Positions 18,137 through 61,309 of a stretch of DNA of 64,000 bases are shown here, piece after piece. The stretch spans positions 1,471,355 through 1,535,354 of the forward strand of contig NC_134030.1 in the NCBI RefSeq assembly GCF_964204645.1, in the 5' to 3' direction. The notes under the pieces are model-generated. The model did not search any database, had not been told where the DNA came from, and saw only the letters and a program-made list of their open reading frames with translations. This stretch comes from Tubulanus polymorphus (taxonomy: Eukaryota > Animalia > Nemertea). Within the stretch, counting starts at the first letter, position 1; every line of letters starts with the position of its first letter. The position numbers and the translations under genes are program-made.

Positions 18137-18670
18137 CATTCTATCTGGTGTGCAGCTATCTGATAGGCCGCTGCTGAGGCGTATTAATCCGATTTTGGGG
18201 AAAGGCAGCAGCGGGCGACATAGGATTAACCGGTGGTGGTATCCTATCGGGAACCAAGTTTCTTTTGAATTCCCCCACCAAGTCCCCAAACGGGCAGTCT
18301 TGTAAAATGATCATCACTGTAAAATAAAAATAGAGAGAAATACATTAAACAACAAGTCGAATGGTTTCGATGCTACGGTTAAGAATTCTGGTACTCGGCG
18401 AGGTTAAACATTCATTTCTTAAACTTTACAATCGATTGTCACATTGATGGCGCCATCTATCCTTTCTAAAAACAACTATAGGATTTCAATTGCACAATGT
18501 TAATACTAGGGAACAACAGTTATTATTAGATTTTGATTATCAGTGACACACGTCACACTAAATGATATTGTATGAAAATAGTTAAACTACTTACACTTCG
18601 GTAGAAATAAACGTACAAACTCCTCCCGCCGGAACGCACGACGAATTCTAAAAGCAAGTGTTCCTGCTTG
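18137..18670 (-). pseudogene. Paralog fragment: exon 6 end fused to exon 7, short intron, exon 8 with premature stop
   Basis: 18670-18595 reads QAGTLAFRIRRAFRREEFVRLFLPK then gtaagt; from 18316 it reads MIILQDCPFGDLVGEFKRNLVPDRIPPPVNPMSPAAAFPQNRINTPQQRPIR-stop. Confidence 0.85.
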
Positions 18671-19834
18671 ACAAAACTAGTTTGAATAAGAGCTGTTTGT
18701 TTTAATGAGATGAACTGAATCAATAGAATTATGTAACTGAACCTAAGTGTGTCCAGTTCCCAAATAAGGATTTGTGTTTTTCTAACCCATTTACGTAAGA
18801 TATCAACAGACAGGGTTCATTCAGAGGTCAATCCTAAATGTCCCTCCCTTGAGAAGAATGACATTTCAGGTCATCAAAAGATAAAAATTCATTTAAAATC
18901 TGAATCTTTGGCTTTTCTATAAACAGATTGCAGATTGCATTGGCTTGAAACCTGCTTTTGGCATCTAGAAAAATAAGTAAAAATCATTTGAAAATACATT
19001 TTATAATCGAGTCCGTCAAACAGTTCAATACTTTCTTACACTTATTCTTAACAAAGTATGAATAAATTAGCATGAAAACAGTACATTTGTAATTGCAGCA
19101 GCTTAGCCGCTTGAAGTCGAAGGGTCTGCCCCCCCCCCCCCGTGTTTTTCTCTGAGCTTTCGGCATCTAGTAAGATAACTATGATATAATGATATTAATA
19201 GAAAAATTTAAAGTAAAAGTATTGAATAAATTGAAGATACATCATATAATCGAGGCAGTCAAACAGTTCAGTACTTTCTTACAACTATTCTTAATCATGA
19301 ATAAATTAGCATGGAAACAGTAAATGTGTACTTACAGTAGCATACGGGCTGGAACTTGAGGGGCCCGCGGCCCAGGTTTTTCTAATTGCTTTAGGCATTG
19401 TTGTAATGCATGGTATGAATAATTAGCATGGAAGCAGTACATTTGTAATTGCAGCAGCTTATGGGCTGGAGGTCGGGCTGGAAGTCGAAGCTTCTGCGCC
19501 CCCTGTTTTTCTCTGAGCTTTCGGCATCTAGTAAAATAACTATGATATAATGATATTAATAGAAAAATTTAAAGTAAAAGTATTAAATAAATTGAAGATA
19601 CATCATATAATCGAGGCAGTCAAACAGTTCAGTACTTTCTTACAACTATTCTTAAGCATGGTATGAATGAATAAGCATGGAAGCAGTAAATTTGTACTTA
19701 CATTAGCGTATGGGCTTGACGTACTCGGACCTGCGCCCCGGGTTTTTTTTATGGCTTTAGGCATTTTCTGAAAAACAAGTAAAAATATTAAATCATTTGA
19801 AAATATATCAGTCAGTCTTATTCTGGTTCAGTGA

Positions 19835-20109
19835 ACTAATTCTTTATATGGTGCATGTAGGGGTCCAGGAACACCACATCCACTAATTCTCTATATGGTG
19901 CATGTAGGGGTCCAGGGACACCACATCCACTAATTCTCTATATGGTGCATGTAGGGGTCCAGGAACACCACATCCACTAATTCTCTATATGATGCATGTA
20001 GGGGTCCAGGGACACCACATCGACTAATTCTCTATATGGTGCATGTAGGGGTCCAGGGACACCATATCCACTAATTCTCTATATGGTGCATGTAGGGGTC
20101 CAGGGACAC
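19835..20109. repeat. 47-bp satellite array 1 (about 6 copies)
   Basis: Unit actaattctctatatggtgcatgtaggggtccagggacaccacatcc. Confidence 0.97.
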
Positions 20110-20318
20110 GTATTGTTAAAAAGAGGCAGTTTAACGTCGTACCACAGGACAAACAGATAAAAATCGCTGATAAAATGTATTGATAAAACGTATTGTTAAA
20201 AAGAGGCAGTTTAACGTCATACCACAGGACAAACAGATAAAAAATCACTGATAAAATGTATGGATAAAACGTATTGTTAAAAAGAGGCAGTTTAACGTCG
20301 TACCACAGGACAAACAGA
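20108..20318. repeat. 80-81-bp tandem repeat (about 2.6 copies)
   Basis: acgtattgttaaaaagaggcagtttaacgtcgtaccacaggacaaacag at 20108, 20188 and 20269. Confidence 0.9.
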
Positions 20319-21164
20319 GTGCAATAATCAATGATTTTAATCCAAATAAGATCTTTTTAGTTGTGACTGTTTGAATTGAGAGGCGGCGATCTCGCTAGTG
20401 AGCCAAAAGACGGACACTTGAAATGAAAATAATATAAATAGTCAATTTCATTCGACATTTTTATTATGACGTTCATTAATTAAAAAATTAGCATGAAAGC
20501 AAAGAATTTATAATTACAGGAGCATATGGGCTTGATGTTGAGGGACGCCCTTGTCCGCTGGGTGTCTTTTTCGTGGCTTTTGATATCTAAAAAATTAGTA
20601 ATAATATTGAATAAATTGAAAATATATCATATATCGAGCCAGTCAAACAGTTCAGTACTTTCTAACAACTATTCTTAATCATGAATAAATTGAAAATATA
20701 TCATATATCGAGCCAGTCAAACAGTTCAGTACTTTCTAACAACTATTCTTAATCATGAATAAATTAGCATGGAAACAGTAAATTTGTACTAACAGTAGGA
20801 TACGGGCTTGATGTTGAGGGCCCGCACCCCACGTTTTTTTCACTGCTTTCGGCATTATCTAGAAAAATAAGTAAAACTATAAAATCATTTGAAAATAAAT
20901 TATATATCAGATTGTCAAACGGTTCAATACTTTCTTAATCATGGTATGAATAAATTAGCATGGACGCAGTAAATTTGTACTAGCACCATCGTTTGTACTG
21001 GACGTGAGGGTGCCCTCGCTCATTGAAATTCCCTTTTGTTTACCATGAGGTAACATTTCAGATGGAGCCACTTTGACTATAATAAACGGTTGTAGTTCTA
21101 CAGTTCACTGCTTCAGGTTTTCTATTGCAATATGTCACTATTGAACAAGAAACAAGAAATCAAT

Positions 21165-21594
21165 CGAAGTTTGTCCGAACTGGTTTTTCAGTTTTTCTCC
21201 ACTCGTCTATAACGGGCTATCAATCAATATGGTCGAATGTGCAGAATGTTCCAGCTGATAAAAACTGGGTTCCAAAATAATCAGCCCTTTGCATGTGATG
21301 ATGCGAACGATCTGCCTGGGTGCACCCTGGTATAGATTTGACGATGCAGTAATGTATGACGGACATTACCTGTCAGTAGCAGAAGCAGGGTTTAATATTC
21401 TATATATATAAATTTCGGTTTCAAGCTCAAGAATGATGACTTCAAACAGGCGTTTACGATAACTTACTTCAATTCAGGACATGGAAATGTTAAAACGTCG
21501 TTTTTGTTGTTGTTGTTGTTTTTCAGTTCTTTTTGCATACGGGCTTGATGTACTTGGACACGCGCCCCGTGTTTTTTTTCATTGCTTTAGGCAT
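21165..21594 (-). pseudogene. Paralog fragment: exon 1+2 fused, followed by intron 2
   Basis: MPKAMKK/TRGACPSTSSPYAKRTEKQQQQQKRRFNISMS-stop (1-nt frameshift), donor at 21467, then about 300 bp almost identical to 36634-36940. Confidence 0.85.
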
Positions 21595-21665
21595 AATCTA
21601 GAAAAACAAGTAAAAATATTTAATCATTTGAAAATATATCAGTCAGTCTTATTCTGGTTCAGTGA

Positions 21666-22514
21666 ACTAATTCTCTATATGATGCATGTAGGGGTCCAGG
21701 GACACCACATCCACTAATTCTCTATATGGTGCATGTAGGGGTCCAGGAACACCACATCCACTAATTCTCTATATGGTGCATGTAGGGGTCCAGGGACACC
21801 AAATCCACTAATTCTCTATATGGTGCATGTAGGGGTCCAGGGACACCACATCCACTAATTCTCTATATGGTGCATGTAGGGGTCCAGGGACACCACATCC
21901 ACTAATTCTCTATATGGTGCATGTAGGGGTCCAGGGACACCACATCCACTAATTCTCTATATGGTGCATGTAGGGGTCCAGGGACACCACATCCACTAAT
22001 TCTCTATATGGTGCATGTAGGGGTCCAGGGACACCACATCCACTAATTCTCTATACGATGCATGTAGGGGTCCAGGGACACCACATCCACTAATTCTCTA
22101 TATGGTGCATGTAGGGGTCCAGGGACACCACATCCACTAATTCTCTATACGATGCATGTAGGGGTCCAGGGACACCACATCCACTAATTCTCTATATGGT
22201 GCATGTAGGGGTCCAGGGACACCACATCCACTAATTCTCTATATGGTGCATGTAGGGGTCCAGGGACACCACATCCACTAATTCTCTATATGGTGCATGT
22301 AGGGGTCCAGGGACACCACATCTACTAATTCTCTATACGATGCATGTAGGGGTCCAGGGACACCACATCCACTAATTCTCTATATGGTGCATGTAGGGGT
22401 CCAGGGACACCACATCTACTAATTCTCTATACGATGCATGTAGGGGTCCAGGGACACCACATCCACTAATTCTCTATATGGTGCATGTAGGGGTCCAGGG
22501 ACACCACATCCACT
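21666..22514. repeat. 47-bp satellite array 2 (about 18 copies)
   Basis: Same unit, near-identical copies. Confidence 0.97.
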
Positions 22515-22706
22515 TAGTTGTTGGGCCCGGGCGCTTTCACCCTTCTTGCTGAAAATCAACTGATATCCTGAATTCTGACTAATTACAGATTGAAAACTGT
22601 GATTCACAAGTGCATAATCAATTATTTCAATCCAAATAAGATTTTCTTAGCTACAGTTTAAATCATCTTAGTTTAATGAAATATGAAAACAAATAAAGAT
22701 TCTTAC

Positions 22707-23710
22707 CTCCGTCAGATCTCCTTAAACACCCGCCCACGGACTCTTTCTGACCATCTTTTGGCACCCGGGGGCGGCTGTCTGACAGGCCGCTGCTGAGGCG
22801 AATTCATTTGGCGTGGGGGAGGGGCAGCAGCGGGCGACAAAGGATTAAGCGGTGGTGGTATCCTATCGGGAACCAAGTTTCTTTTAAACTCCCTCACCAA
22901 GTCCCCAAATGGGCAGTCGTCTAAAATGTTGATCACTGTAAAATAGAAATAGAGAGAAATACATTAAACAACAAGTCAAATGGTTTTGATGCTACGGCTA
23001 TGAATATTATTCCAACAGGGGGCGCCTGATGTTACTGAAGCATGATTTCAATGTAACTTCAGTAATTAAAATTATTTTTATTCAGCAGTTAAATTGCACA
23101 ATTATTCGTTATCTATGATTTCCTGATGAGATTTACTGTTTTGAGCATCCAGAGATTCCAAACTTTGTCGTTTAACCAATAATTGGTTTAACGATATCAC
23201 ACGGCACCTGCTGAACTCTTGTTACGTGTATCAGTCTTATATATAACTATAGTCCCAAGTGAGATAAAAAAAATTAATTAGTTTGAACTTGAAATAGATA
23301 TCGCTGTTGTGCTGGATTGGTGAAAAAACCTGTAAAAATAAAATAAAACAAATTATTAGATGGATATTCATGAATGGAAATGACAACTGTAGAGATAGCA
23401 TCATTGATATATTACTTCTACGATGATGATACTTAATCGAATTTGAATTTATTCCTAATTAGCGTAATTTATGCAAAACAGCTACTACCCTCTATTTTCA
23501 AATTACAAATTGAAATAAGCCTGATTTATTAGAAAATAGTTATCACTTACCGGCGTAGAAACACCACTGGGTGGCGTTTTCGGTAAAAACTCAATTCCGG
23601 AAATGGAAACATCAAAAGGTTGTTGTTGTTGTTGTTGTTGTTGTGTTCTAGTAGCGTACGGGCTTGACGTTGAGGGCCCGCGCCCGGGGTTTTCTTAGAG
23701 CTTTTGGCAT
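22707..23710 (-). pseudogene. Paralog fragment: exons 1+2+3 fused, intron 3, exon 4, then exon 8
   Basis: 23710-23551 MPKALRK../..SSPYATRTQ8PFDVSISGIEFLPKTPPSGVSTP then gtaagt (2 nt short); exon-4-like at about 23330; exon 8 copy 22935-22707 is 229 nt (1-nt deletion). Confidence 0.88.
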
Positions 23711-23781: not shown

Positions 23782-24583
23782 ACTAATTCTCTATATGGTG
23801 CATGTAGGGGTCCAGGGACACAACATCCACTAATTCTCTATATGGTGCATGTAGGGGTCCAGGGACACCACATCCACTAATTCTCTATATGGTGCATGTA
23901 GGGGTCCAGGGACACCACATCCACTAATTCTCTATATGGTGCATGTAGGGGTCCAGGGACACCACATCCACTAATTCTCTATATGGTGCATGTAGGGGTC
24001 CAGGGACACCACATCCACTAATTCTCTATATGGTGCATGTAGGGGTCCAGGGACACCACATCCACTAATTCTCTATATGGTGCATGTAGGGGTCCAGGGA
24101 CACCACATCCACTAATTCTCTATATGGTGCATGTAGGGGTCCAGGGACACCACATCCACTTATTCTCTATATGGTGCATGTAGGGGTCCAGGAACACCAC
24201 ATCCACTAATTCTCTATATGGTGCATGTAGGGGTCCAGGGACACCACATCCACTAATTCTCTATATGGTGCATGTAGGGGTCCAGGGACACGACATCCAC
24301 TAATTCTCTATATGGTGCATGTAGGGGTCCAGGGACACCACATCCACTAATTCTCTATATGGTGCATGTAGGGGTCCAGGGACACCACATCTACTAATTC
24401 TCTATACGATGCATGTAGGGGTCCAGGGACACCACATCCACTAATTCTCTATATGGTGCATGTAGGGGTCCAGGGACACCACATCCACTAATTCTCTATA
24501 CGATGCATGTAGGGGTCCAGGGACACCACATCCACTAATTCTCTATATGGTGCATGTAGGGGTCCAGGGACACCACATCCACT
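23782..24583. repeat. 47-bp satellite array 3 (about 17 copies)
   Basis: Same unit. Confidence 0.97.
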
Positions 24584-25125
24584 TAGTTGTTGGGCCCGGG
24601 CGCTTTCACCCTTCTTGCTGAAAATCAACTGATATCCTGAATTCTGACTAATTACAGATTGAAAACTGTGATTCACAAGTGCAATAATCAATGATTTCAA
24701 TCCAAATAAGATTTTCTTAGCTACAGTTTAATCATTACCAAGTGGAGCTAGGAGCTGATCTAATGTGTTTTTCATCAGCTAATCATTCATATTTAGGCCT
24801 CTATCTAATACATCTGTATGATACTTACGATGATTTTAAACGAATCTGACTGTCCAATACGACGTCTGTGAAACGAATGATTCGATCAGCTGACCGCTGG
24901 TCACTGTTCAGTAGTGTTCGCTATAAAAGAGAAAACATATTCATACAATGACAACCAATTCATGATAATAATAGAAAAACTATCAGATTAAGAAATAAAG
25001 AATATCATCATATCAAATAAATTGAAAATCCATCATATATCGTGCCACAGTTCAGTACTTTCCTTACAACTATCCTTAATCATGGTATGAATCAATTAGC
25101 ATGAAAGCAGTAAATTTGTACTTAC

Positions 25126-26164: not shown

Positions 26165-27233
26165 AAAGGCATATTAGGCACATCAAAACAAATCCGGAAT
26201 TGTCCCCGAACGAAGTGGCTCCCTCCACTCTCCATCAGTATGCCGGGCCACCACCTCTACCTCTCGGGCCACTCGATCCCTCGCCAGCTTTTTGGGCGAG
26301 TGAACGAGTGACCGCCCGAGATACGGATGGAGGAGCAGGACCCGCACCTGCCCCAGCCCCACCACCATCCCTCCTCGGCCTCTTCCTATTAATTCTTACC
26401 CCTTCCTCCTGATTGCCTTGATCAGCTGCGCCATCCGCAGTGGCAACTCTTGCCTCCCCTCCCTGAGGAGCCACGACGACCGCAACTTTTCTTTTCCTTT
26501 TCGTGCGAGTTTTTTTTGGCGGTGGTCGTGTCTGTAAAGAGAAAAAAATGAACAATAAGTATTTAGTATAATACACCTATGTGCGTATAATACACCTATG
26601 TGAGTCCTTCGCTATTAAACACATAGAACTGTGGAACTGGATCCCGAGGCTAATCTAAATGCGCGCAACTGAGTCCAAGTGCAACTAAAGCACACAACTG
26701 CGGATCAGATAAATCATTGGTAGATTCACTTGTAAAATATCTCGCTAAGAACAAACTAAAAACTGTAGAATGTTGTTGAAACTGTTGTGTGTTATTCATT
26801 TGGGTATATGTTATATTTGAATTTTTTTCAGTGAAGGCATATTAGGCGCACATAAACGTCTCATGCGTTCAAGGCATATCCCTTCACTGAAAGAATATTC
26901 TTTAGATCAGTTAACAAATCCGGAATTGGCCCCGAACGAAGTGGCACCCTCCACTCTCCATCAGTATGCCGGGCCACCACCTCTACCTCTCGGGCCACTC
27001 GATCACTCGCCAGCTTTTTGACGAGTGACCGCCCAAGATACGGATGGAGGAGCAGGAGGAGCAGGACCCGCACCATCTCCAGCCCCACCACCATCCCTCC
27101 TCGGCCGCTTCCTATTTATCCCCTCCCCTTCCTCCCGATTACCTTCGTCAGCCGCACCATCCGCCGGGACCACTCTTGCTCCTCCTCCCTGCGGAGCCAC
27201 GACGACCGCAACTGGTACTTTTCGGTTTCTCAT
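26165..27233 (-). pseudogene. Two tandem frameshifted copies of exon 9
   Basis: 26531-26165 keeps the ctttacag acceptor (TRPPPKKTRTKRKRK..., +1 nt before KK); 27233-26861 lacks the acceptor and has an 8-nt deletion at the same place. Confidence 0.88.
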
Positions 27234-34569: not shown

Positions 34570-35243
34570 CATATAGAGAATTAGTGGATGTGGTGTCCCT
34601 GGACCCCTACATGCACCATATAGAGAATTAGTGGATGTGGTGTCCCTGGACCCCTACATGCACCATATAGAGAATTAGTGGATGTGGTGTCCCTGGACCC
34701 CTACATGCACCATATAGAGAATTAGTGGATGTGGTGTCCCTGGACCCCTACATGCATCATATAGAGAATTAGTGGATGTGGTGTCCCTGGACCCCTACAT
34801 GCATCATATAGAGAATTAGTGGATGTGGTGTCCCTGGACCCCTACATGTACCATATAGAGAATTAGTGGATGTGGTGTCCCTGGACCCCTACATGCACCA
34901 TATAGAGAATTAGTGGATGTGGTGTCCCTGGACCCCTACATGCACCATATAGAGAATTAGTGGATGTGGTGTCCCTGGACCCCTACATGCACCATATAGA
35001 GAATTAGTGGATGTGGTGTCCCTGGACCCCTACATGCATCATATAGAGAATTAGTGGATGTGGTGTCCCTGGACCCCTACATGCACCATATAGAGAATTA
35101 GTGGATGTGGTGTCCCTGGACCCCTACATGCACCATATAGAGAATTAGTGGATGTGGTGTCCCTGGACCCCTACATGCACCATATAGAGAATTAGTGGAT
35201 GTGGTGTCCCTGGACCCCTACATGCACCATATAGAGAATTAGT
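34570..35243. repeat. 47-bp satellite array 4 (about 14 copies, opposite orientation)
   Basis: Reverse complement of the unit; ends about 70 bp before the exon-1 acceptor. Confidence 0.97.
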
Positions 35244-35314: not shown

Positions 35315-35377
35315 ATGCCTAAAGCAACAAGAAAAACACGGGGCGCGGGCCCCTCACATTCAAGCCCGTATAATAAA
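35315..35377 (+). CDS. Coding exon 1: MPKATRKTRGAGPSHSSPYNK
   Basis: Acceptor ttttctag at 35311 just before the ATG, donor gtaagt at 35378; the peptide is conserved in about 15 other copies in the window. Confidence 0.9.
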
Positions 35378-36553
35378 GTAAGTACAAATTTACTGCTTCC
35401 ATGCTTATTTATTCATCCCATACTTAGTATTTTGTACCCCTGGGTCCAGTTTCACAAAAAGGATAAACGCCTTAATCGATTTAAGATAAACTGAATTAAT
35501 GAAGAAATTAAATCGATTTAAGAGTTAAACCTGTTTGTGAAACTAGGCCCTGAATTGCATCTAGAATGAAAAAAAAGAAAAAAAAATATTGAAAATAACG
35601 TTGGTGAAATATTTCTGGATCTTTCTGGATTTCTGCTCAATGCATCGTTTAGTAAAATATCGATATTCTCTAAAAGTAAAGATATAAGAATAAAAATATT
35701 GTATTGAATCGTGATTAGTTACTGTATGCGCTGCTAGTTGTTGCCCAACCCATAGCCTCATTTCTCTCCATTCTAAATTTGCATTGTTTAACATTGTCTG
35801 GTCGCTATGGAAACTATTTATTTAAGTTTCTTTGTGGTATCCATGGCAACAGTAACGTTTAGGTAGTGGCACCAATTATGGGTCCCAACGTTCCCATGGC
35901 GATACATGAGAACATTTATCCTATTTTTGACCTACATGACGTAAGATGGTAGTGAGTCGATGACGTCATTTTCGTCTCACCACTAATGAAAAAAAAAATT
36001 AAATGAAAAAAAAGGAAGAAATCGTTAGAATTACGTTTATGAAATTTTTCTGGATCGGCTAAATGTATTGTTCCATTAAATATCGACATTCTCTAAAATT
36101 ATAGGCATCAATATCAAAATGATGATACAGCAGACTCCGCTTAACTCTGTTCTATTTGGACCATTAATTAACCGAATACCAACTTTTTAAAATTTTAGGA
36201 TTTTTACGTTAAGGATCAGAAAATGTGTATGCAATTTCAACCGGGTACCGAGTAGGGTGGCCGAGTCTACTGTAGTCTGCTGCCCCCTCGAATCCATTAC
36301 CTTATCATCTCTCAATTTGCATTGTTTGACCTCGTCTGGTTGCTATGGAAACTATTTAGTTATATCAGGAACGGTTTTTTCGAGGTAACCAGTGGCAACA
36401 TTTAACAGGCGTGTCCGTCCTAGAGATAAACTGTCTGATTTCACAGCCACATCCGTCCTGGAGATAAACTGTTAGATAAACTCTGATTTCGCGTCTGTCC
36501 TATTTCTTGTCATTGTATGAATATGTTTTCTCTTTTATAGGGTACAGCGCAGC

Positions 36554-36596
<43 letters not shown>

Positions 36597-39500
36597 GCAA
36601 CAAAAATTTGATATTTCGATGTCCGGAATAGACGTAAGTTATCGTAAACGCCTGTTTGAAGTCATCATTCTTGAGCTTGAAACCGAAATTTATATTATAG
36701 AATATTAAACCCTGCTTCTGCTACTGACAGGTAATGTCCGTCATACATTACTGCATCGTCAAATCTATACCAGGGTGCACCCAGGCAGATCGTTCGCATC
36801 ATCACATGCAAAGGGCTGATTATTTTGGAACCCAGTTTTTATCAGCTGGAACATTCTGCACATTCGACCATATTGATTGATAGCCCGTTATAGACGAGTG
36901 GAGAAAAACTGAAAAACCAGTTCGGAAAAACTTCGATTGATTTCACTCACATTTACAGAAATTTGGTCCGACCCCAAAACCATTTACTTACACTATACAA
37001 ATCAGATCAGGTTTTTAACATTGTCTTTGATTGTATTTTCAGTTTTTACCCACAACGCCGCCCAGTGGTGTTTCGACGCCGGTAAGTGATAACTATTTTC
37101 TAATAAATCACGCTTATTTCAATTTGTAATTTGAAAATAGAGGGTAGTAGCTGTTATGTATAAATTATGCTAATTAGGAATAAATTCAAATTCGATTAAG
37201 TCTCATCATCGTAGAAGTCATATATTAATGATGCTATCTCTAAAGTTGTCATTTAAATTAAGTGTTATATTTACTACTTCATTTGCTTCATGACCCAAAA
37301 ACCTCTACTATATAACTACTGGTTTTGTTCTAATCTTGGAGAATTTGCTGCAAAATTTACTTATCATTTGTTAAACAGTTTTTATTGAAAACCTGAATCA
37401 GTGATACATGCATTCATGAATATCCATCTAATATTTTGTTTTATTTTATCTTTACAGGATTTATCACCGATACAGCACGTGGACGTAAGAGATTAAACAT
37501 TGATCTTGAATTTTAAGTTCAAACTAATTTATTTTTTATCTCACTCGGGACTATAGTTATTGCGTTCACTTTGCGTCCAGTTGTCTCGGGTAGTTTTTGA
37601 TTTATCGTGTTGATAATTGGTTTATATACTCAAACTCAAAATATCGGCGCAATTGGAATTAAGATGGCGCACTTGTATGTCCATTTTTTTCCCCGGCAAA
37701 ATTAGCACTTTAGCAGATTTTAAGGATCAATTCTGTTGTTATATTACATTGAAATCAGAGTTTAATATATATCGGTATAGAGCAGATTTTTGCTCTAGTT
37801 ATAAATAAAGTTATAAATAATCTCATGACATGTTCTGTATATGTGTAGTGAGTTTCAATGTCTTTGGTTCCTTTTAAACCAGGGGGAGTTAAATTTGAAA
37901 ATGTCAGATCGTCGAGCATTTCAGACCGCATCCAAAGTGGGTCCCTGCACCCCTAGTTATACCGTTAATATTTTAATAATACATTAATATTTTTATTTGA
38001 TAGAATATATTGATATACCATACATTGATATCGGTCTTGTAATTGGATCAACAACCATGAGATCAAAACACAGCAAATATGAACCTGCTGTGAATCAATA
38101 GATTTGTGATAAATGTAATGAAATTGTTATTTTTCATATTGACTTTTTGAGTTAAGGGTCTGTTGTATAAGAGTCTTTGGTCTCGCGTGTCAATGTATGA
38201 TATCAATCTGTTGTATTTCCTCGTTCCAATGTTTAAAAGGTGTTCGTCACCTTATATTAATAAACTACTTTAACCGTTAGATGGCGCCATAAGTGTGATA
38301 TTTGATTTATGGGATACCCGCAAAACCAGCTATTCCACCAGATGGCGCAACGAGTAGTAGGTCGTTCGTTGTCAAAATTAGTTCATTTTCGATGAACTTT
38401 GAACTGGTTTGAAGAAGAAATACTTTCATTCTTCTACTCTGACATCGGTTTAGTTTTCATTAATAATTGATTCATTTAAGAGAACAATTCATTCAGATTT
38501 AATTGAAATGTACAAGAAAATCGAACGCAGACGACCAACTATTTACTAGCGACACCTGGTGGATCCTCGCCTGCCATAAGTGGAATCCTCGATTGCTACA
38601 GTAAGACTGCGGGTAACCCATTGTTTGGCGTGTGAAGTAAAGTAAAGTTAGAAAACGGATGTTTAACTTTGTTGTGAAACGAAAGCGTTTTGGAGATTTT
38701 TAAACCAATCAAATCAATATTTTGATATTACGCTTGAAACCCTTCCCACTCATATTCTACTTACTAAGTATATATTCTTGTTTCCGTGGAAATCATGGTG
38801 AGTGGCGCCATCTATACAGTGGAGTTAGCTTTATAAATCGAGCTTGCTTCGACAAGTGGCTCCATCTATTCCCTAATACTGAAGCGAGGTAACCAGCAGC
38901 GCCCTCATATACAGGAAATGAACGCCTATCAAGTTTAACAATGCACGGTGTATTGACCACAGCGACCGGTGATAATTATATCAATGTTGATTAGCTATTG
39001 CCATAGACAGGTCCGTAGCGTTTGACTGGACCAGAACGGGGCCCCCTAACCAAAACAAATTTTGAAAACGTGCCCAGATAAATTGCCTCTGGGAGATTGA
39101 TTTAACGAGGTTTTGATTAAATGAACAAATTTTAATATTTGTAAGTTTAACATTTCTGTTTTTAATTTTTCTTTGCGAGGAACTGAATTTTCGAACCCCC
39201 CCGAACCGCCTCAAGCTATGTTCCTGATATAGTGCTAGCTATACCTGAATACTTTTCTCTTATTGAAATTGTCTAAAAAACCAGCACCTTGAACTAATGA
39301 ACGTCATAATGAAAATGTTTAAAAATTCAACCGTTAATGAATTTGACTAATGTATTTTTTTTATTTTCATTTCTAGCATCAGTTTGCCTCAGAGGCAAGG
39401 TCGCCGTCGCTTAATGTAAGTATCAGTGACGCCCTCAATCTCACATGCCTCACTTCCCTCCTAATGTAACCATTTTTATGAAATTCCTCAAGAAAATATA

Positions 39501-42500
39501 TACTAGTAATCTTAGAATACACGTTTTTGTACCCAGACCCCTTCATTCTACTGAACTACCGTGTAATAAGTGCCTGTTGTGTTCATTTTCTGTTGCATTG
39601 ATTTATATATTATTTCTATTTACAGTTGTCAAACAACAGCAGCAGCAGCAACAGCAGCAGCAGCGCACCCCTCCCGCCGGAGACGCCTCCCGACTTGCAA
39701 GCAAGAAGTAAGTTCAGTCTTCAAATACAATTTCAACGCATTCAATTTTTTGTATGGCGTTAAAACGGTTAAAGTTGTGACTAGTTTTCATAACTCCGTG
39801 ACGTCATATTTCCATCGAGTACCGGACCCTTTCCTATGTTTTTTGCCAATTTGGATTGAATGATCGCCAGCGGTTTTTCTATACGACCCGGCTCTGCTGT
39901 ATTGCATTTAGCCATCCTTTTTCTTGGCGTTTTTATAAGAAGGTGTTTGATTTTGTCTCTAAGGGATTTAGGAATTTAAGAGACACTTGTACTTTCTATG
40001 CAGTGAGTTTGTTCTGTTTTTGTTCCCTCGTGAATTTTATTTTTGTTTGAATCAAATCAAATCAGTACATCTTTCTTGAATTGCGTGTATGTTATAATAT
40101 TATGTAAGTTATAATGTTATCAAATATCTGTTATATTTAAACCGAATATTTAATTGTTGTATTTTGAATGCGATAATGCCGCTCCCTGCTAAAGTCCAGC
40201 GTCGTCATCGTGAGGGATGCGGTCATCTGTTCGGGCCCTGATTACGTTCTGTGTTCATCCTGTTGGGCTACATCGGGCGTTATATGAGTTAATCCTTCCT
40301 CGACTTGCGGATTGTGGTCGGAAGATCTATGGGTTCGGGCCGATAAGTCCCGGAAACAGAAAGTACAGTTTCTGCCGATGTGCCCATTGATGTCTCTATT
40401 TCAGAACATCACAGCGGTCGCCGGCTGTACAAGCACGGTCGGCTTCCCAACTCCTTTCTCTGAGGAGGATCGCTGGTTCTCTAGTAACGGTCAGTCACCA
40501 GTCAATCAACGGTTCAGCTGGTTCAGTTTCCCAGGTATCGGCGCGCGACAGTCGGGATACCTGCACAGGAACTCAGGTCCGGTCCGGGCTACTCCGAGCA
40601 CCGGTCCGGTCCAGGCCTCACTGGGTAATGAACATCTGGTCCGGTCCGGGCGGCTTCGAGCACCGGTCCGGTCCAGGCATCACCAGATACTGAACATCCT
40701 GTCCAGTCAGCTCCGTGCACCGGTCCGGTCCAGGCATCACCGGGTACTGAACATCTGGTCCGGTAGCTTCGAGAACTGGTCCGGTCCAGGCATCACCGGA
40801 TACTGAACATCCTGTCCGGTCAGCTCCGTGCACCGGTCCGGTCCAGGCATCACCGGATACTGAACATCTGGTCCGGTCAGCTTTGAGAACCGGTCCAGGC
40901 ATCACTGGGTACTGAACATCTGGTCCGGTAGCTTCGAGAACTGGTCCGGTCCAGGCATCACTGGGTACTGAACATCTGGTCCGGTAGCTTCGAGAACTGG
41001 CCTGGTCCAGGCATCACCGGGTACTGAACATCTGGTCCGGTCAGCTCTGTGCACCGGTCCGGTCCAGGCATCACCAGTTACTGGTCCGGTCCGGGCAGCT
41101 TTGAGCACCAGTCCATTCCAGGCATCACTGAGTACTGAACATCCAGTCTGGTCCGGTCCAGGCAACACCGGGTACTGATCATCCAGTCCGGTCCGGTCCA
41201 GGCATCACTGGGACTGAACATCCAGTCTGGTCCGGTCCAGGCATCACCGGGTACTGATCATCCAGTCCGGTCCGGTCCAGGCATCACCGGGTACTGAACA
41301 TCCAGTCTGGTCCGGTCCAGGCATCACCGGGTACTGAACATCCAGTCTGGTCCGGTCCAGGCATCACCAGTTACTGAACATCCAGTCCGGTCCGGTCCAG
41401 GCATCACCGGGTTCTGATCATCCAGTCCGGTCCGGTCCAGGCATCACCGGGTACTGAACATCCAGTCCGGTCCGGTCCAGGCATCACTGGGTACTGAACA
41501 TCCAGTCCGGTCCGGTCCAGGCATCACTGGGTACTGAACATCCAGTCTGGTCCGGTCCAGGCATCACCGGGTACTGAACATCCGGTCTGGTCCGGTCCAG
41601 GCATCACTGGGTACTGAACATCCGGTCCGGTCCGGTCCAGGCATCACCGGGTACTGAACATCCAGTCCCGTTTAGTCCAGGCATCACCGGGTACTGAACA
41701 GGGTTCGTCGCGGTGCTTGAAAAGCTTGAAATGGCTTGAATTTGAAAAATACTACTCAAGCGCTTGAAAACAGCTTGAAAATAGATCGAAAGCTTGAAAT
41801 AATTATTTTTGACTTGAAATAAAAAGTTATGGCTTGAAATGCTTGATTATCACAAATTTTCTTCTTCGCGAATTTTTTTCGATGAAATCGCAGACAGAAT
41901 ATGTTCTTGAGTTGTTTCTACGCGTGCGTCATGTTTTAGGCATCAATAAAGAAATTAATTGAATTGTATTGAATCGCTATGAGACTCTTGTGGTGAAACT
42001 CTACGGTGTCTGGAGACATGAACATACAGGGAAATTTCAGTCATGCATGTTATCGAGCATTGATGTAAAATGGCATTGAAATCCCACACCAGGAGTGAGA
42101 GCCATGTTGAAGGCACAGCGACCTAGTCAAAGTCATTGAACATTACAAATTTCGTATTAGGCCATACAAAAATCAAGGTCTGTTTGCCGTCATCCGACCG
42201 ACCCGACTTCAAAGGTACCCAGTGGAAACTTTTTTCTTGGATTCATCGAAATAAATTGTATTTTTGATACAAATGGCCGACCCACTGCCGATGTATGAGC
42301 TATGTATGTTTGAAGTTAAGTGTGCATCATGTGAAAACATGCCTCGACTATAGTTGAAGTTTTCCAGGAAACTGGCAGTGTTCCAATAAGCTGCCATTCA
42401 TTCTAAAGCTGGTAATGTTATAGCGTGCATATATTCAATCTACTGTTTCATTTTGAACGCAGATTTCGGATGTTGTTTCCGCTAAAAGTGGTGATGATAA

Positions 42501-45500
42501 ATTTGTTGTTTTTTTTGCCCCAAAATTTTGCACAAAAAAAATGATGCTACCTTCCTACTGACTTATCCCAAAAATAGTAGGTGTAACGGCAAAACAGACA
42601 ATTAATTTGGGATGGCCAAATATCCAAATCTTGATTGATATGAATATTTAAGCTAGGAAATGCTGAAAATCATTGTGATGAACAGGTTTCATCTCTAACA
42701 GAATCGTATCAACTCGGAGGTTCCACTGGAATCAAAATTTTACCTCTTTTTTAACATTTTTATACGAACCTGTTCAAAATAGGCAAATTGGCTGCGACTA
42801 ACGAAAATTGCTTCCAACGTGCCTTAAAAAATAGCTTGAAAATGGTATAAATCTAGCTTGAAATGGCTTGAAAATACCTGAGCTTGAGACAATGAACCCT
42901 GCTGAACATCTGGTCCGGTCAGCTTCCAGCACCGGTCCGGTCCAGGCATCACCGGTTACTGAACATCCGGTCCGGTCAGCTTCCAGCACCGGTCCGGTCC
43001 AGGCATCACCGGTTACTGGTCCGGTCCGGGCAGCTTTGAGCACCGGTCCGGTCCAGGCATCACTGAGTACTGAACATCCAGTCCGGTCCGGTCAGCTCCG
43101 AGCACCGGTTCAGGCATCACCAGGTACTGAACATCTGGTCTGGTCCGGGCGGCCTGGCATCAATGTTTCGAATTTAAAACATAGTTATCATGGTTCTAGG
43201 TTTGGTAGAGGGCGCTCTTCTACCAGATGCAGGAGCGAGGTCACCTTCACGGAGATCGAGATCGAGGGATTATGATTGATTCTGTAGGAACCATCATCAT
43301 TCATCAGTTCAGGTCGAGGGACCGTTTAGGAAGTTCACGTCTTTCACGTCGAGGGACCGTTTAGGAAGTTCACATCTTTCACGTCGAGGGACCGTTTAGG
43401 AAGTTCACGTCTTTGACGTCGAGGGACCGTTTAGGAAGTTCACGTCTTTCACGTCGAGGGACCATTTAGGAAGTTCACGTCTTTCACGTCAGGGACCGTT
43501 AAGGAAGTCGTCACAATAATCAGGATTTCCGCGATTTCGAAAGTCAGATTTTAAACTTGTTATTGTCATTGTAAGCTACCGCAGTTACAGGTAAGCCTAT
43601 TCTTGATTGCCCGAGACAGGCGTGCAGATATTGTTCCCGACTTTTGGTTGATTTTCTTGTGACTTGTTTGTTTTAGGGGTGAGATGGATGAGCCTTATTG
43701 TTTTTTGACATATATAGGTCATCCAAGATGGCCGCCACAGCCATTACAATGTGTAAAATAGCCATTTTGAAGCTTGTGACAACTCTACAATCTACAGTTT
43801 CAGACCAATTTACCAATTACTTATTCTGTGGTTTCATAATGGTAGGAGAATGAGCCTTATTGTTTTTGACATATATAGGTCATCCAAGATGGCCGCCACA
43901 GCCATTTCAATGTGTGAAATAGCCATTTTGAAGCTTGTTACCGCTCTACGGACTTGAGTTTTAAGCTTAAGACTTAAGATGGCCACCACAGTTATATCAA
44001 TGTGTTAAATCTTATCCGATTTGGAGCTTGTTACTGCTCTAAGATGTAGAGGTTTAGAGGTTTATAATTTTATTCATACTTGTACTGTGGTTTATTTATG
44101 GTGGTCAGAGGATGAGACCTATTACAATTTGCATTCTCTACTTGACTCACTGGTCAAGGGTTAATATCTAGTTTGATAAATGTGGAGCATGTCGGTGAAT
44201 CACCCCCCCCCCCCCCCCCCGGACTCTGATCTCAATGTCTGATGTCAATCGTCAGCAGTTTCAATGGAATGGGCTCGATTAGGTGTGGAACAAGTGGAAT
44301 CCTCGATTGCCACAGTCGAACCTAGAGTATTAAGAGCTCAATTAGGTTCTTCTTTGCGTCTCTTCTCCGGTTGGAGTGCTCCAGTTTCCACCGAATGGAG
44401 GAAGATTAGAGATGTGCAGATTCAAGTCCACCATGCGGACTCCGGCTCCGGCAGCTCAAGGTTCAGCTCCGGCTCCGGCAGCTCAAGGTTCAGCTCCGGC
44501 TCCGGCAGCTCAAGGTTCAGCCCGAACTCACACAATGCCATCTCAAGCATCTACTAATGCTGGTTGGAGAACAAGTGCACAGCTCCAACATTCTCGTGCC
44601 CCTTCTGGTCAGAATAATTCTAGTTCATATCGGGGAATGCTCCTAAAAGGAGCTCTTCCTCTCGGAGAAACTCAAAATGAATGCTCGGGGCCAGTGAGAG
44701 GTTGTCTATAACGAGCAGCCACCTACTGATCCGGCGTTCCCGGGTCGTATCACGGCGGCTACTGTCTTCAATTCTGAACACCTCCCGACATGCGCCCGAA
44801 AGCAGGTCACGAGACACTAATCTCGTCAGCTCTCAAAGATCTGGCCAAAAAGAGAGCAATAGAACCAGTACGGGACGAAGCCACATCCGGCTGGTTTTCA
44901 TGAATATTTATGCTCCTTAAGACCACAGGGCCTCGATGGACTGTCATTCCTCGAGCGGCACCTGGATATCCCGAGGCTTCCGATGACTAAAACAGGGAGG
45001 TAATTCAAGGTCTCCGCCGAGGTTAATGGGCGGCTTCATTGGACCTGAAAGATGTCAGGTTCCTATTCACCCGAAATCTCATCAATTTTACAGAATGAAG
45101 TGGAAACTCCGCCAGTTCCAGTTCAGGTCTCTTCCAGTCGGCCTCAGTACAGCCCACGCCCTGGGTATTTACCAGCTTGGGTCAAGTCCAGAAGGTACAC
45201 TACACTCCAGGGCTGGGTTTCATAGATATGGAAGAAAAATAATTCCAGGGAACATTTTGAAATTTGTCAGTTATAACCATGGTTTCTCATTGTTAGTATG
45301 GTGATTGAGGATTTATCCCTTTGGATAACTTTGATACTCAGTCTATGAAACCGGGTCCTGGAGTATTTGTCTGTTGGTTTACCTCGACGACTGGTTACTA
45401 GTACCAAACTCGACTATAGAATGTCAGGAGGCGGTGACCGCTGTCGACCGCTGTCGTAGACTTAGTTCACCAGTTCCGCGTAAACTAAGTAAAATCTCAC

Positions 45501-48500
45501 TTGATGCCGTCCCAACAGTTCACATCTCCGGATCAGCACGGTCTTTCCGTCCATGGCTCGAGTAGCCAAACTTCAAGAAGCGTAGTTACCACAAACGAGA
45601 GGACAGCTAGTTATCGGTGACGCCTGTGGCTAAATGCAATACCGCACTGCCAGGGGTCGTATCTCTGGCTATCTACACATTCAGAGAATATTAACTAAAA
45701 CCATAGGAAAGGGTCAAGCACTACTCCGAAAAAAACTAATTTTATTTCCAAAAAATTATGATATTATATGGATTGCATGCTGTGTGGAAGAAGTTTTCAA
45801 AATTATTTAGGAGCTTATTATAATTTGAATGCATGAATTGAGAGCAATTTGAAATGTGTTGATATCCGAAAGTGTTTCCATTGACTTCACTCATTCACCT
45901 GATGAAGCTTCTATACATTAGTACCCAAAGCTTGTGTGTCAAATAAACTAGTTACACGTCCTATAAAGTACTACTTGTCTCGTTATATATTCTAAACGCC
46001 AGTTAACAATTCCAGTAAGTCAGGTTTAGGGAATAGATATTTAAACCTTCAGATGATACCGATGTTATACAATTCCAGTAACTCAGGTTTAGGGAATAGA
46101 TATTTAAACCTTGAGATGATACCGATGTGATACAATTCCAGTAAGTCAGGTTTAGGGAATAGATATTTAAACCTTGAGATGAAACCGATGTGATACAATC
46201 CCAGTAAGTCAGGTTTAGGGAATAGATATTTAAACCTTGAGATGATACCGATGTTATACAATTCCAGTAAGTCAGGTTTAGGGAATAGATATTTAAACCT
46301 TGAGATGAAACCGATGTGATACAATTCCAGTAAGTCAGGTTTAGGGAATAGATATTTAAACCTTCAGATGATACCGATGTGATACAATTCCAGTAAGTCA
46401 GGTTTAGGGAATAGATATTTAAACCTTCAGATGATACCGATGTAATACAATTCCAGTAAGTCAGGTTTAGGGAATAGATATTTAAACCTTGAGATGATAC
46501 CGATGTTATACAATTCCAGTAAGTCAGGTTTAGGGAATAGATATTTAAACCTTGAGATTAAACCGATGTAATACAATTCCAGTAAGTCAGGTTTAGGGAA
46601 TAGATATTTAAACCTTCAGATGAAACCGATGTGATACAATCCCAGTAAGTCAGGTTTAGGGAATAGATATTTAAACCTTGAGATGAAACCGATGTGATAC
46701 AATTCCAGTAAGTCAGGTTTAGGGAATAGATATTTAAACCTTGAGATGATACCGATGTGATACAATTCCAGTAAGTCAGCTTTAGGGAATAGATATTTAA
46801 ACCTTCAGATGATACCGATGTAATACAATTCCAGTAAGTCAGGTTTAGGGAATAGATATTTAAACCTTCAGATGAAACCGATGTGATACAATCCCAGTAA
46901 GTCAGGTTTAGGGAATAGATATTTAAACCTTCAGATGATACCGATGTGATACAATTCCAGTAAGTCAGGTTTAGGGAATAGATATTTAAACCTTCAGATG
47001 ATACCGATGTAATACAATTCCGGTAAGTCAGGTTTAGGGAATAGATATTTAAACCTTCAGATGAAACCGATGTGATACAATTCCAGTAAGTCAGGTTTGA
47101 TATTTAAACCTTGAGATGATACCGATGTGATACAATTCCAGTAAGTCAGGTTTAGGGAATAGATATTTAAACCTTCAGATGAAACCGATGTGATACAATT
47201 CCAGTAAGTCAGGTTTAGGGAATAGATATTTAAACCTTCAGATGAAACCGATGTGATACAATTCCAGTAAGTCAGGTTTAGGGAATAGATATTTAAACCT
47301 TCAGATGATACCGATGTAATACAATTCCGGTAAGTCAGGTTTGATATTTAAACCTTGAGATGATACCGATGAATTTAGCAATTTTGAATGAATTAAACCA
47401 ATATGAGATTTCGATCCTAAGAATATTGGAAGCTTGTGTTTAACGTTACTAAATAGTAATATTATATAAAGCTAGAAGGACACGAGCGTATCCATTTTTC
47501 GCCCGATCGCGACGATTAAATTCGCCGGTGAATTTATACGCCCGATACGAGCGGGTACCGATCTATCTATAAATCGGCCGTCACGGTGATTTCGTCGCCC
47601 GCCGACATTAAACATGTTCGATATTTACGCCGGTGTTCGGGTCACTTGTTAATTCGCTCGGCTTGTCGGCAAGCTTAAAAAGATTTAGAAAAAACTATAA
47701 ATTCTCATTCCTGAATGAACTGGATTCATCTGGGTTCAGTTTCATGAGACACAGTTCAAACTGCTCTTGAATTTGAGTTTGTAATTAATGTATGTGATTA
47801 TAATGAATTGTATTTTTGTTTTACAGCTTTGGCATTTCGGTTAAGTCGTGCGTTCCGGCGGGAGGAGTTCGTCAGAATATTTCTACCGGAGTGTAAGTAG
47901 TTTAACTATTTTCATACAATATCATTTAGTGTGACGTGTGTTACTGATTCAGGCACGGATCCAGGAATGTTTCCAAGACGGGGTTCATAAAAATGCTGAC
48001 TAAAATCTCTAATAATAGCCGGGGCCTATACGGCATATTTTTTGGCCAAACATAAGGCCTTTTTTTAATAGCATGGTTTGGTTGCTCCCAAAATTTGAAG
48101 AAACATAAAATAAAAAAGAATTAGAAAAAAAATTTTTTATTCCTGTCTGTGAAACAAATTCAGTGAAAAACCGAGCAAAAAAGATTTTTCACCTCGGCCG
48201 AATGAGAATCCTGGATTGAACGATGAAACAATTGAAAAACGCGAGGTTCTTTTTTGATCGCAGTGTGCAGAATTCAAACTTTCCAAGATTCATTTGTTCG
48301 GACATATGTATATTGCCCTATTGACAGTTCCCTCTTCCTTCTAAAAGTGATTTTATCTCACTGAGGGAATTTTTAAAAAATTTTCTCTGAAATGATATGG
48401 TAGCGTTTTTTTTTTTTGCTTTAAAAATTTTTTGGTAGCCGATCAGCGGGGTCACGACCCCTGAAACCCTCCCTGGATCCGCGCCTATGATATCTCCTCA

Positions 48501-58650: not shown

Positions 58651-59344
58651 TTGTTTAATGAATTGGTAGAAATTCTATTTTTAGGTGACAGGTCAAATAG
58701 ATTAGAACAGTAATTTATGCAGAGGTTGAATTAATTTAATGTTTGATATACCAAAGAATGGTTTATTGTGAAGATTTAATTAAAATCTTAAATAAAGAGT
58801 TGTTCAATTTCATAAATGTTTTGTTTTCGATGAAGTTTTTTCATTTTCTGGATTTGAGGAATTTGACTTTAAACACATCGGTGGATTCAGCACAGTTCTG
58901 TGGACACAGTTTTTGGACCGAGACACAGCTCAAGACCCAGTTACAAGTTCAACTGGACTCCATCCCAAAAAACCCTGGGCCCTTCAAACCTTTAAGTAAG
59001 ATGCTCACTTACAGATTCATAAAATTGACCCTTATTATCTTGTCATCTGCAGAACCATCTCAAGAGGCTTAAACCAAGAATTTCTTGTAATGTTCAACAA
59101 ATGTGAATTACATTAAGTAATTTTTGAGATCGACTTATTACCACCAGTATTGAGTTTTTTCTAAATCACAGTCTACTTATTTTATATTCATCCACGATTT
59201 CATAGCTCTTTAACTATTCAACCCTTTCCCTGATGGGCCCTGGCCCCAATTGCTGAACCCAGTTCTCCAAGTCTAACGTCTGGGTTTAATGGTTTATCAG
59301 AGAATTAATGGATTAATTGGAAATAATCTAACAATCAATAAAGT

Positions 59345-61309
59345 TGTTCTTTTTTGATACGGGCTAGAAGTTGAGGGGCCCGCGCCCCGGGTTTTCTTTA
59401 AAGCTTTTGGCATTATCTAGAAAAACAAGTAAAAATATTAAATCATTTGAAAATATATTAGTCAGTCTTATTCTGGTTCAGTGAACTAATTCTCTATATG
59501 GTGCATTTAGGGGTCCAGGGACACCACATCCACTAATTCTCTATATGGTGCATGTAGGGGTCCAGGGACACCACATCCACTAATTCTCTATATGATGCAT
59601 GTAGGGGTCCAGGGACACCACATCCACTAATTCTCTATATGGTGCGTGTAGGGGTCCAGGAACACCACATCCACTAATTCTCTATACGATGCATGTAGGG
59701 GTCCAGGGACACCACATCCACTAATTCTCTATACGGTGCATGTAGGGGTCCAGGGACACCACATCCACTCATTCTCTATACGATGCATGTAGGGGTCCAG
59801 GGACACCACATCCACTAATTCTCTATATGGTGCATGTAGGGGTCCAGGGACACCACATCCACTAATTCTCTATATGGTGCATGTAGGGGTCCAGGGACAC
59901 CACATCCACTAATTCTCTATATGGTGCATGTAGGGGTCCAGGGACACCACATCCACTAATTCTCTATATGGTGCATGTAGGGGTCCAGGGACACCACATC
60001 CACTAATTCTCTATATGATGCGTGTAGGGGTCCAGGGACACCACATCCACTAATTCTCTATATGGTGCGTGTAGGGGTCCAGGGACACCACATCCACTAA
60101 TTCTCTATATGGTGCGTGTAGGGGTCCAGGGACACCACATCCACTAATTCTCTATATGGTGCATGTAGGGGTCCAGGGACACCACATCCTCTATTCTGTT
60201 TGGGGCATGGAGATTGCCCAGATTGCCTCTGCTAACAACAGACACCCATTCAACATTTCTCTTTGTGGTACTTTCTTCTTCCTCTTTTCTCTCATTTTAC
60301 AAATTGATATTCAACTATGACCTTTTTCATTTTGATATGATGTTTATCTTTACATCATGGTTGCTGGAGATTGTACAAGGAATGACACAAGAAATAATAT
60401 CCTTAGTTTTAAACTCACAGCTGTTTGCAATTCTTTCATTTAAGCACAGGTTCAATTGAAACGATGCATTCCTATACATATACGCAATCATATCTTTTTT
60501 CGAGTCATCATTCTCAGGGAAATTTGATCTCCACTCAGGTACAGTCTACTGGCTTGCCAGTTATCCTTTAACTTTTTTACAAAATTATCTTTTCAAAATG
60601 AATTACCATGAAAGCAGTAAATTTGAACTTGCCTTATCATAAGGGCTTTTTCTTTTACTCTTTGTTTTAGCTTTAGGTATCTTTGATTTGCTGGTGGTTT
60701 TAACATGCATGTTGAGGGAGCTCTATCAATCCAGGAACAGTCAGCTCACAAGCAGCCCCTGCCCCAAAAGGTTTTGACATTATATTTTCAAAAGCTCTAG
60801 TTGTTCTGTAGAACCGAGAGCGGAGCTCTGACTTGTTCCCCTCACTGCTGAGGTCTACTTTCTCTGATTCGCTGATTGGCTTCTCTTTGGTACATTTTAG
60901 ATGATCAAAAACTAGAAACTGTCATGCGTTTATTCATTTTGGTATATGTTAAAATTCTTTTACAATAATGGCATATTAGGCACATCAAAACAAATCCGGA
61001 ATTGTCCCCGAACGAAGTGGCTCCCTCCACTCTCCATCAGTATGCCGGGCCACCACCTCTACCTCTCGGGCCACTCGATCACTCGCCAGCTTTTTGACGA
61101 GTGACCGCCCAAGATACGGATGGAGGAGCAGGAGGAGCAGGACCCGCACCATCTCCAGCCCCACCACCATCCCTCCTCGGCCGCTTCCTATTTATCCCCT
61201 CCCCTTCCTCCCGATTACCTTCGTCAGCCGCACCATCCGCCGGGACCACTCTTGCTCCTCCTCCCTGCAGAGCCACGACGACCGCAACTGGTACTTTTCG
61301 GTTTCTCAT
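59345..61309 (-). pseudogene. Convergent paralog fragments: exon 9 copy, degenerate exon 1, satellite, exon 1 fused to start of exon 2
   Basis: 61309-60985 frameshifted exon 9; about 60680-60620 degenerate PKAK..SPYDK; 59413 MPKALKKTRGAGPSTSSPYQKRT. Confidence 0.85.
59485..60189. repeat. 47-bp satellite array 5 (15 copies)
   Basis: Same unit. Confidence 0.97.

Follow-up and report, generated by a model that had tools for sequence, protein, structure and literature searches.

The 64,000-nucleotide window analysed here (C6:1471355-1535354 of the ribbon worm Tubulanus polymorphus) is repeat-rich animal DNA that carries one intact nine-exon gene on the plus strand and, on the minus strand, a scrambled block of broken, decaying partial copies of that gene. 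Among these fragments two introns have been removed exactly at their splice borders, intron 1 in an older event and intron 2 in a recent one, and other family members carry joins that look half-finished. A sequence-only reading of the window had claimed precise, intron-by-intron presence and absence among paralogs at introns 1, 2 and 6; all of the strings it quoted exist, on the minus strand, and the exact losses of introns 1 and 2 stand, but the loss of intron 6 and a further loss of intron 1, in a copy at 59413, do not. What the array shows, in paralogous fragments of very recent origin, is the known process of piecemeal exact intron loss and not a new kind of system. As to how the joins were written, the reading we favour, with about even confidence, is that short patches were copied from an intron-less template, which would have been spliced RNA or its complementary DNA (cDNA) at the origin and fused paralogs later.

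Two introns removed exactly

The reference is the intact gene, whose exons are called E1 to E9:

35315-51431, plus strand: reference full-length gene, nine exons, intact, with all eight introns GT..AG and phases consistent
35315-35377, 36541-36633, 37043-37081, 37458-37484 and 39377-39415, plus strand: E1, E2, E3, E4 and E5 of the reference gene
39626-39707, 47827-47892, 49676-49905 and 51039-51431, plus strand: E6, E7, E8 and E9 of the reference gene

The gene forms one unit of an array that repeats in tandem every ~33 kb; family sequence occupies C6 at 0.66-0.69 and 1.03-1.74 Mb, C3 at 0.40-0.73 and 1.23-1.32 Mb, and C8 at 15.61 Mb. It is a many-copy orphan, none of its exons, searched singly, having a match in Pfam. 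We sampled 200 kb of bulk array sequence and took the other copies as 3-kb loci from genome searches, so that the copies on contigs C3 and C8 are thinly sampled; for the joins, copies were aligned to the genomic reference or short patterns were searched, with exons handled singly and no spliced model. The genome searches returned 28 full-length copies in which E1, intron 1 and E2 align end to end at 92-100% identity (18 on C6, nine on C3 and one on C8), together with 44 heads of intron 2 attached to E2.

The copy in which both introns are missing begins at 23710:

23551-23710, minus strand: fused E1-E2-E3 of the 23710 copy, reading frame broken
23710-23650, 23649-23590 and 23589-23551, minus strand: its E1 (61 nucleotides (nt), frame broken), E2 and E3, with zero bases between exons
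22675-23550, minus strand: remainder of this mini-gene copy, comprising intron 3 shortened internally by 155 nt, E4 with a destroyed donor site, an intron-4 head that runs into an intron-7 tail, E8 and an intron-8 head

The seamless E1-E2-E3 string and the kept intron 3, both described from the sequence beforehand, are present as described. E1 meets E2 between 23650 and 23649, E2 meets E3 between 23590 and 23589, and intron 3 follows with its GTAAGT head at 23550. The length across the E2-E3 join is exactly that predicted from the GT..AG borders of the reference (36633/37043). The joins were also expected to validate the gene model internally, which they do for the E1-E2 and E2-E3 splice borders only.

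Eight sampled members, the 23710 copy and loci L022 to L028, make up a mini-gene family, and all of them have in common the 155-nt deletion in intron 3 and the junction of intron-4 head with intron-7 tail. They form a clade against the full-length copies (support 100/99), within which the loss of intron 2 is derived. Six of the eight mini-genes retain intron-2 sequence, and the tail of the 23710 copy is 99% identical to one of these intron-bearing sisters, L025. Genome-wide, the E2-E3 join pattern occurs at only three family places, the 23710 copy, L022 (C6:1724302) and L023 (C6:678222), and intron 2 is absent at exact length only from the first two. L022 is a duplicate of the 23710 copy lying 230 kb away in a positionally homologous array unit and is 95% identical to it over 421 nt. 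Taking these two as sisters relies on their common E1 frameshift, their E2 subtype and that positional homology, rather than on phylogeny, and so is a probable pairing. A further member, L026, has the same unusual E2 subtype as the 23710 copy, joined to the rest of intron 2 after an out-of-register deletion. Because the intron-bearing sisters include both L025, with its 99%-identical tail, and L026, with the same E2 subtype, and because the join has only three places in the genome, the loss of intron 2 was a recent, derived and single event in the ancestor of the 23710 copy and L022.

The deletion in L026 (its positions 655-680; C6:675.4 kb) is a contrasting type of event: with a microhomology of two bases, it removed the E2 tail and ~130 nt of the intron-2 head. 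The possibility that the joins are imprecise genomic deletions with indels at their junctions was checked for both introns; the joins at introns 1 and 2 are exact, in contrast to the ordinary, imprecise deletion of L026.

The loss of intron 1 can be followed in a second copy, which starts at 21594:

21156-21594, minus strand: 21594 copy, E1 fused to E2 and followed by intron 2, frame broken
21594-21531 and 21530-21468, minus strand: its E1 (64 nt) and E2, joined between 21531 and 21530, with the intron-2 head from 21467

Here E1 abuts E2 and the sequence from 21467 to 21156 is homologous to reference intron 2, in agreement with the earlier description of a copy without intron 1 but with intron 2. 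An E1 that runs directly into an E2 starting with AGAAC is found at 14 places on C6 and two on C3, with one E2 head type throughout, and the E1 of these fused copies has its last base precisely at the position that precedes GT in intron-bearing cassettes. Between the fused E2 head and the canonical one 5 of 12 bases differ, and an imprecise deletion reaching into the intron head was considered as the source of this odd sequence. That origin is ruled out by a C3 locus, L040, in which the same E2 subtype (its head the same except for one base and a longer A run, its body the same) starts directly after a normal intron-1 AG. Because this E2 follows immediately on the intron's AG, the intron-1 join lies at the splice borders. 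Nowhere in the genome is E1 fused to the canonical E2 head, which fits a single event that later spread to both contigs. Intron 1 was thus lost exactly and once, earlier than intron 2 and before copies spread to C3 and C6. A better-preserved fused relative, L024, has an open frame across the E1-E2 join.

Two observations concern the surroundings of this join. In L039 (1111-1628) and L040 (1135-1628), both on the minus strand (C3:551219-554238 and C3:670286-673305), after the fused E1-E2 comes a hybrid intron of 177 nt, in which seven bases of intron-2 head are joined to the last ~170 nt of intron 1, and then a second complete, in-frame E2; this tandem duplication of E2 could still be spliceable. 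An orphan piece at 24915-24954 of the window, minus strand, with counterparts in L002 and L022, consists of the final ~34 nt of intron 1, AG included, and six E2-like bases, after which the sequence is unrelated.

The fused state might in principle be ancestral, with introns 1 and 2 inserted recently into some copies, possibly as introner-like elements, as had been offered as one explanation. Beyond the pattern of presence and absence itself nothing speaks for such a gain, and we regard it as scarcely credible. A homologous intron 1 is present in 28/28 full-length copies on three contigs and the intron-2 head in 44 copies, whereas the intron-less state is confined to truncated copies, which nest among the intron-bearing members of the mini-gene clade; the state with introns is the ancestral one. 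Neither did the spread of these introns into unrelated genes, which a gain by introners would suggest, come to light: every scored match to introns 1 and 2 lies inside the family arrays on C6, C3 and C8, in a search that for intron 1 scored 40 of 747 first-look candidates and that weak repeats could have escaped.

Half-finished joins

At the third place with the E2-E3 join pattern, L023, the end of E2 is followed by the first 17 bases of the locus's own E3, after which intron 2 resumes from its base 20 and continues through the rest of the intron to a complete E3. The point of resumption coincides with a 7-base motif, AAACGCC, common to the head of intron 2 and the head of E3. A counterpart at the E1 border occurs in lone E1 cassettes, of which the window holds one:

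59321-59413, minus strand: lone E1 cassette (59413-59351, 63 nt) with a damaged intron-1 head lacking its first three bases, GTA, and with no E2

Cassettes of this type occur once per array unit, at 12 places. In them the end of E1 is followed by the E2-head pentamer AGAAC, and intron 1 then resumes where the two sequences are near-identical. In another type of cassette (L001, L011) this AGAAC is followed by unmistakable intron-1 sequence. The 59413 copy had been listed as lacking intron 1. The 30 bases after its E1, however, match intron 1 from its fourth base at 21/30 positions at a fixed offset, which one in 100,000 shuffles reaches; a free local alignment of this tail to intron 1 scores no higher than shuffles, so that the fixed-offset test alone is significant. 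Downstream of this E1 there are neither CAA repeats nor any later exon. On these comparisons the 59413 copy is a lone first-exon cassette and not a loss. The missing GTA and an accompanying T-to-A change in cassettes of this type would both be explained by one short patch from an intron-less donor.

The chimeric structures show that exchange within the family takes the form of patches that reach only ~5-17 bases past a join. With tracts this short, neighbouring introns stay in place, and a partly spliced RNA is not needed to account for the kept ones.

The chimeric joins can also be arranged as a two-step process of exact loss caught midway, an arrangement that we regard as doubtful. In the first step a short patch from a spliced template would set the head of the next exon against the previous exon and resolve inside the intron, giving the states now seen in L023 and in the 59413-type cassettes, with direct repeats of 17-18 bases flanking the intron. 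In the second, recombination between these repeats would delete the intron exactly, producing the state of the 23710 copy.

Template copying, end joining and other origins of the joins

Exact intron loss is familiar from comparisons between species, but its mechanism, with a spliced-RNA template on one side and end joining on the other, is disputed as intermediates are almost never seen. In this young array, parents that bear the introns, two completed losses, a join left half-finished and imprecise deletions of the ordinary kind lie side by side.

An intron-less template is favoured because two exact losses and the chimeras all sit at exon borders, in pseudogenes that are under no selection to keep a frame. 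On this reading the minus-strand pieces would descend from one truncated mini-gene with the order E1E2, intron 2, E3, intron 3, E4, a deletion and E8, which had lost intron 1 early, before the spread to C3 and C6, and part of whose descendants would have lost intron 2 recently. Where the end of a patch lacked homology, it would have been resolved at a microhomology inside the intron, leaving a half-finished join, and segmental duplication of the ~33-kb array unit would then have multiplied each state. The conversion had been described as repeated; this is an overstatement, as there was one event per intron followed by segmental duplication. An RNA template, and with it expression in the germline, would stand behind the first of these patches.

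Several results weigh against this reading, chief among them a single base. The last base of E2 is G in 3/3 join-bearing copies and in 0/44 intron-bearing ones (41 C, 2 A and 1 T). This is unfavourable because C would be expected of a spliced template derived from any of the sampled copies, while an end-joining crossover after a shared A would give G. In L026, which has the same E2 subtype, that end of E2 is deleted, leaving no last base for this subtype to compare. The G may simply be ancestral to a lost E2 subtype, because the 23710 copy, L022 and L023 share an E3 subtype that is absent from all other copies sampled. Inside the mini-gene clade the trees do not resolve. The genome has no E7-E8 or E8-E9 join, and it is introns at the 5' end that were lost, opposite to the 3' bias of oligo-dT-primed cDNA; the 328 kb of sampled arrays contain no further exon join. 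The three long open reading frames scanned in the window (164-244 aa) have no Pfam match, and thus no reverse transcriptase was seen among them. Lastly, the carriers are pseudogenes, the frames of the 23710 and 21594 copies being broken, and their own transcription is only presumed.

The diagnostic G would be expected of a loss at the DNA level, in which a break in intron 2 would have been end-joined between in-register tetramers, TTGA at the end of E2 and TTCA at the end of the intron. A crossover after the A removes exactly one intron length and replaces the exon's last base with the intron's last G. The E3 body subtype common to the three join-bearing copies suggests that they are related near the join, as this model would have it, and L023 could be either a polymerase-theta-type templated insertion, the right end of its insert coinciding with the 7-base microhomology, or an intermediate whose 18-base direct repeats later recombined. 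A model of this kind has been published for worms and flies (PMC3698931). We nevertheless think it unlikely here, though it has a substantial claim. In pseudogene carriers nothing selects for an in-register deletion, and the other deletions of the family are out of register; the perfect microhomology amounts to one base only, the tetramers matching at three of four positions; and the second exact loss, that of intron 1, together with the chimeras on the E1 side, would need further coincidences with splice borders. The comparison with the published cases runs the same way (van Schendel and Tijsterman 2013, PMC3698931): the array resembles them in the in-register removal of a short intron (409 nt) and in a join base that fits the tetramer crossover, and departs from them in its minimal microhomology, in its pseudogene setting without selection and in having a second exact loss in the lineage. 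The base at the E2-E3 join could separate template and end-joining models, which makes the array a potential natural test case.

The sequence-only reading had instead proposed conversion by partially spliced cDNA. Semi-processed retrogenes, such as rodent preproinsulin I, have lost some introns and kept others. On this model the copies would be, or would have been converted by, cDNA of a partially spliced precursor mRNA, and the retained introns would reflect incomplete splicing. The 23710 copy, with introns 1 and 2 absent and intron 3 present together, has just this appearance and resembles a semi-processed retrogene in that respect. It differs in its location inside the parental array and in its history. 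The fused copies keep the parental 5' flank with an array of 47-bp satellite repeats upstream of E1, no poly(A) tract was seen at the copy ends read, their 3' parts carry genomic deletions common with intron-2-bearing sisters, and the loss of intron 1 was a step separate from that of intron 2, the two not being simultaneous, with no 3' exons joined. For these reasons we judge this origin improbable, and the short tracts make it unnecessary. The accompanying statement that these are not ordinary processed pseudogenes is borne out by the same retained flank, missing poly(A) tract and lack of 3' joins.

An error of assembly or alignment has also to be considered in a region so dense in satellites and near-identical repeats. 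It is very improbable: every join is found again in several array units, where the flanks differ and the join has substitutions of its own, and each sits in ordinary intron-bearing genomic context.

With template copying as the favoured origin, the nearest known process is intron loss mediated by reverse transcription and cDNA. The likeness lies in exact removal at splice borders, intact flanking exons, the loss of only some introns and an ancestral state that bears them. Unlike the usual cases, the introns lost here are 5' and not 3', the carriers are pseudogene fragments, one base at the E2-E3 join matches no sampled donor, and a source of reverse transcriptase and expression of the template would both have to be assumed. 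Localized retroprocessing in plant mitochondria (PMC4987113) is organellar and has footprints of RNA editing as its evidence. The array resembles it in piecemeal loss by short conversion tracts instead of replacement by a whole cDNA, and differs from it in being a nuclear array of animal genes without RNA-editing markers.

The 18670 fragment and the rest of the minus-strand block

A third site, at 18670, had been read as joined across the position of intron 6 with intron 7 kept:

18539-18760, minus strand: 18670 fragment, made of a diverged 3' part of intron 6 (~18760-18711), 40 unalignable bases, an E6-like decamer (18670-18661), E7 (18660-18595) and the intron-7 head (18594-18539)
18152-18386, minus strand: intron-7 tail and truncated E8 of the same fragment

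The quoted string is there, but the loss is not confirmed. The resemblance to E6 extends over 10 bases only (9/10, in frame), the other 72 bases of E6 being absent, and upstream of the decamer lies sequence that scores 54 when aligned to the 3' part of intron 6, where shuffles reach 26.8 +/- 3.8 (maximum 42); this homology stops 40 bases before the decamer. Intron 7 is present as head and tail only, 278 nt against 1783. As aligned, the fragment, which occurs at six places on C6, is not a fusion of E6 to E7 and not a loss of intron 6. The decamer may equally be a patch of E6 tail (9/10) or, as a MAFFT alignment would have it, the fragment's own diverged acceptor with a 3-base insertion.

The E7 of this fragment (18595-18660) differs from that of the reference (47827-47892) at nine of its first 20 bases with nearly the same peptide (TLAFRIRRA against TLAFRLSRA), and the next 46 bases of E7 and the 56-nt intron-7 head are almost identical between the two. 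A genome-wide search for a donor paralog of this odd E7 head found none beyond the six known copies. Divergence is confined to exon sequence in the same manner in E2, in E3 and in the tails of E6, and the short-patch traffic described above might also lie behind such exon-limited divergence beside near-identical introns.

The remaining contents of the block are a variant E1 cassette array, 47-bp satellite arrays before each E1 and truncated gene copies:

18930-21000, minus strand: variant E1 cassette array, in which every cassette has an intron-1 head and several have degenerate 5' splice sites, forming the context of the fused copies
21666-22514: 47-bp satellite array that precedes E1 of the 21594 copy by ~70 nt
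23782-24583, 34570-35243, 59485-60197 and 19835-20109: equivalent 47-bp satellite arrays before other E1 copies, including that of the intact gene

For annotation, the minus-strand pieces are pseudogene debris and not functional paralogs. The satellite arrays have 6-18 units and lie ~70 nt upstream of most full E1 copies, where they may belong to the promoter or to the unit that duplicates. In L025 to L028 (in L026 at 1224-1510) E3 is present twice in tandem; the two exons are unequal and expanded (57-66 nt against 39), and an intron-2 tail goes with each of them. Away from other fragments, at 26187-27223 and 60989-61299 on the minus strand, the window has three partial E9 copies with 87-92% identity to the reference. 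A single family copy is situated outside the arrays, on the minus strand at C8:15611357-15613506, with 95% identity over E1-intron 1-E2 and 77% over E3-intron 3-E4. This copy is a candidate for the ancestral locus and could serve as an internal outgroup.

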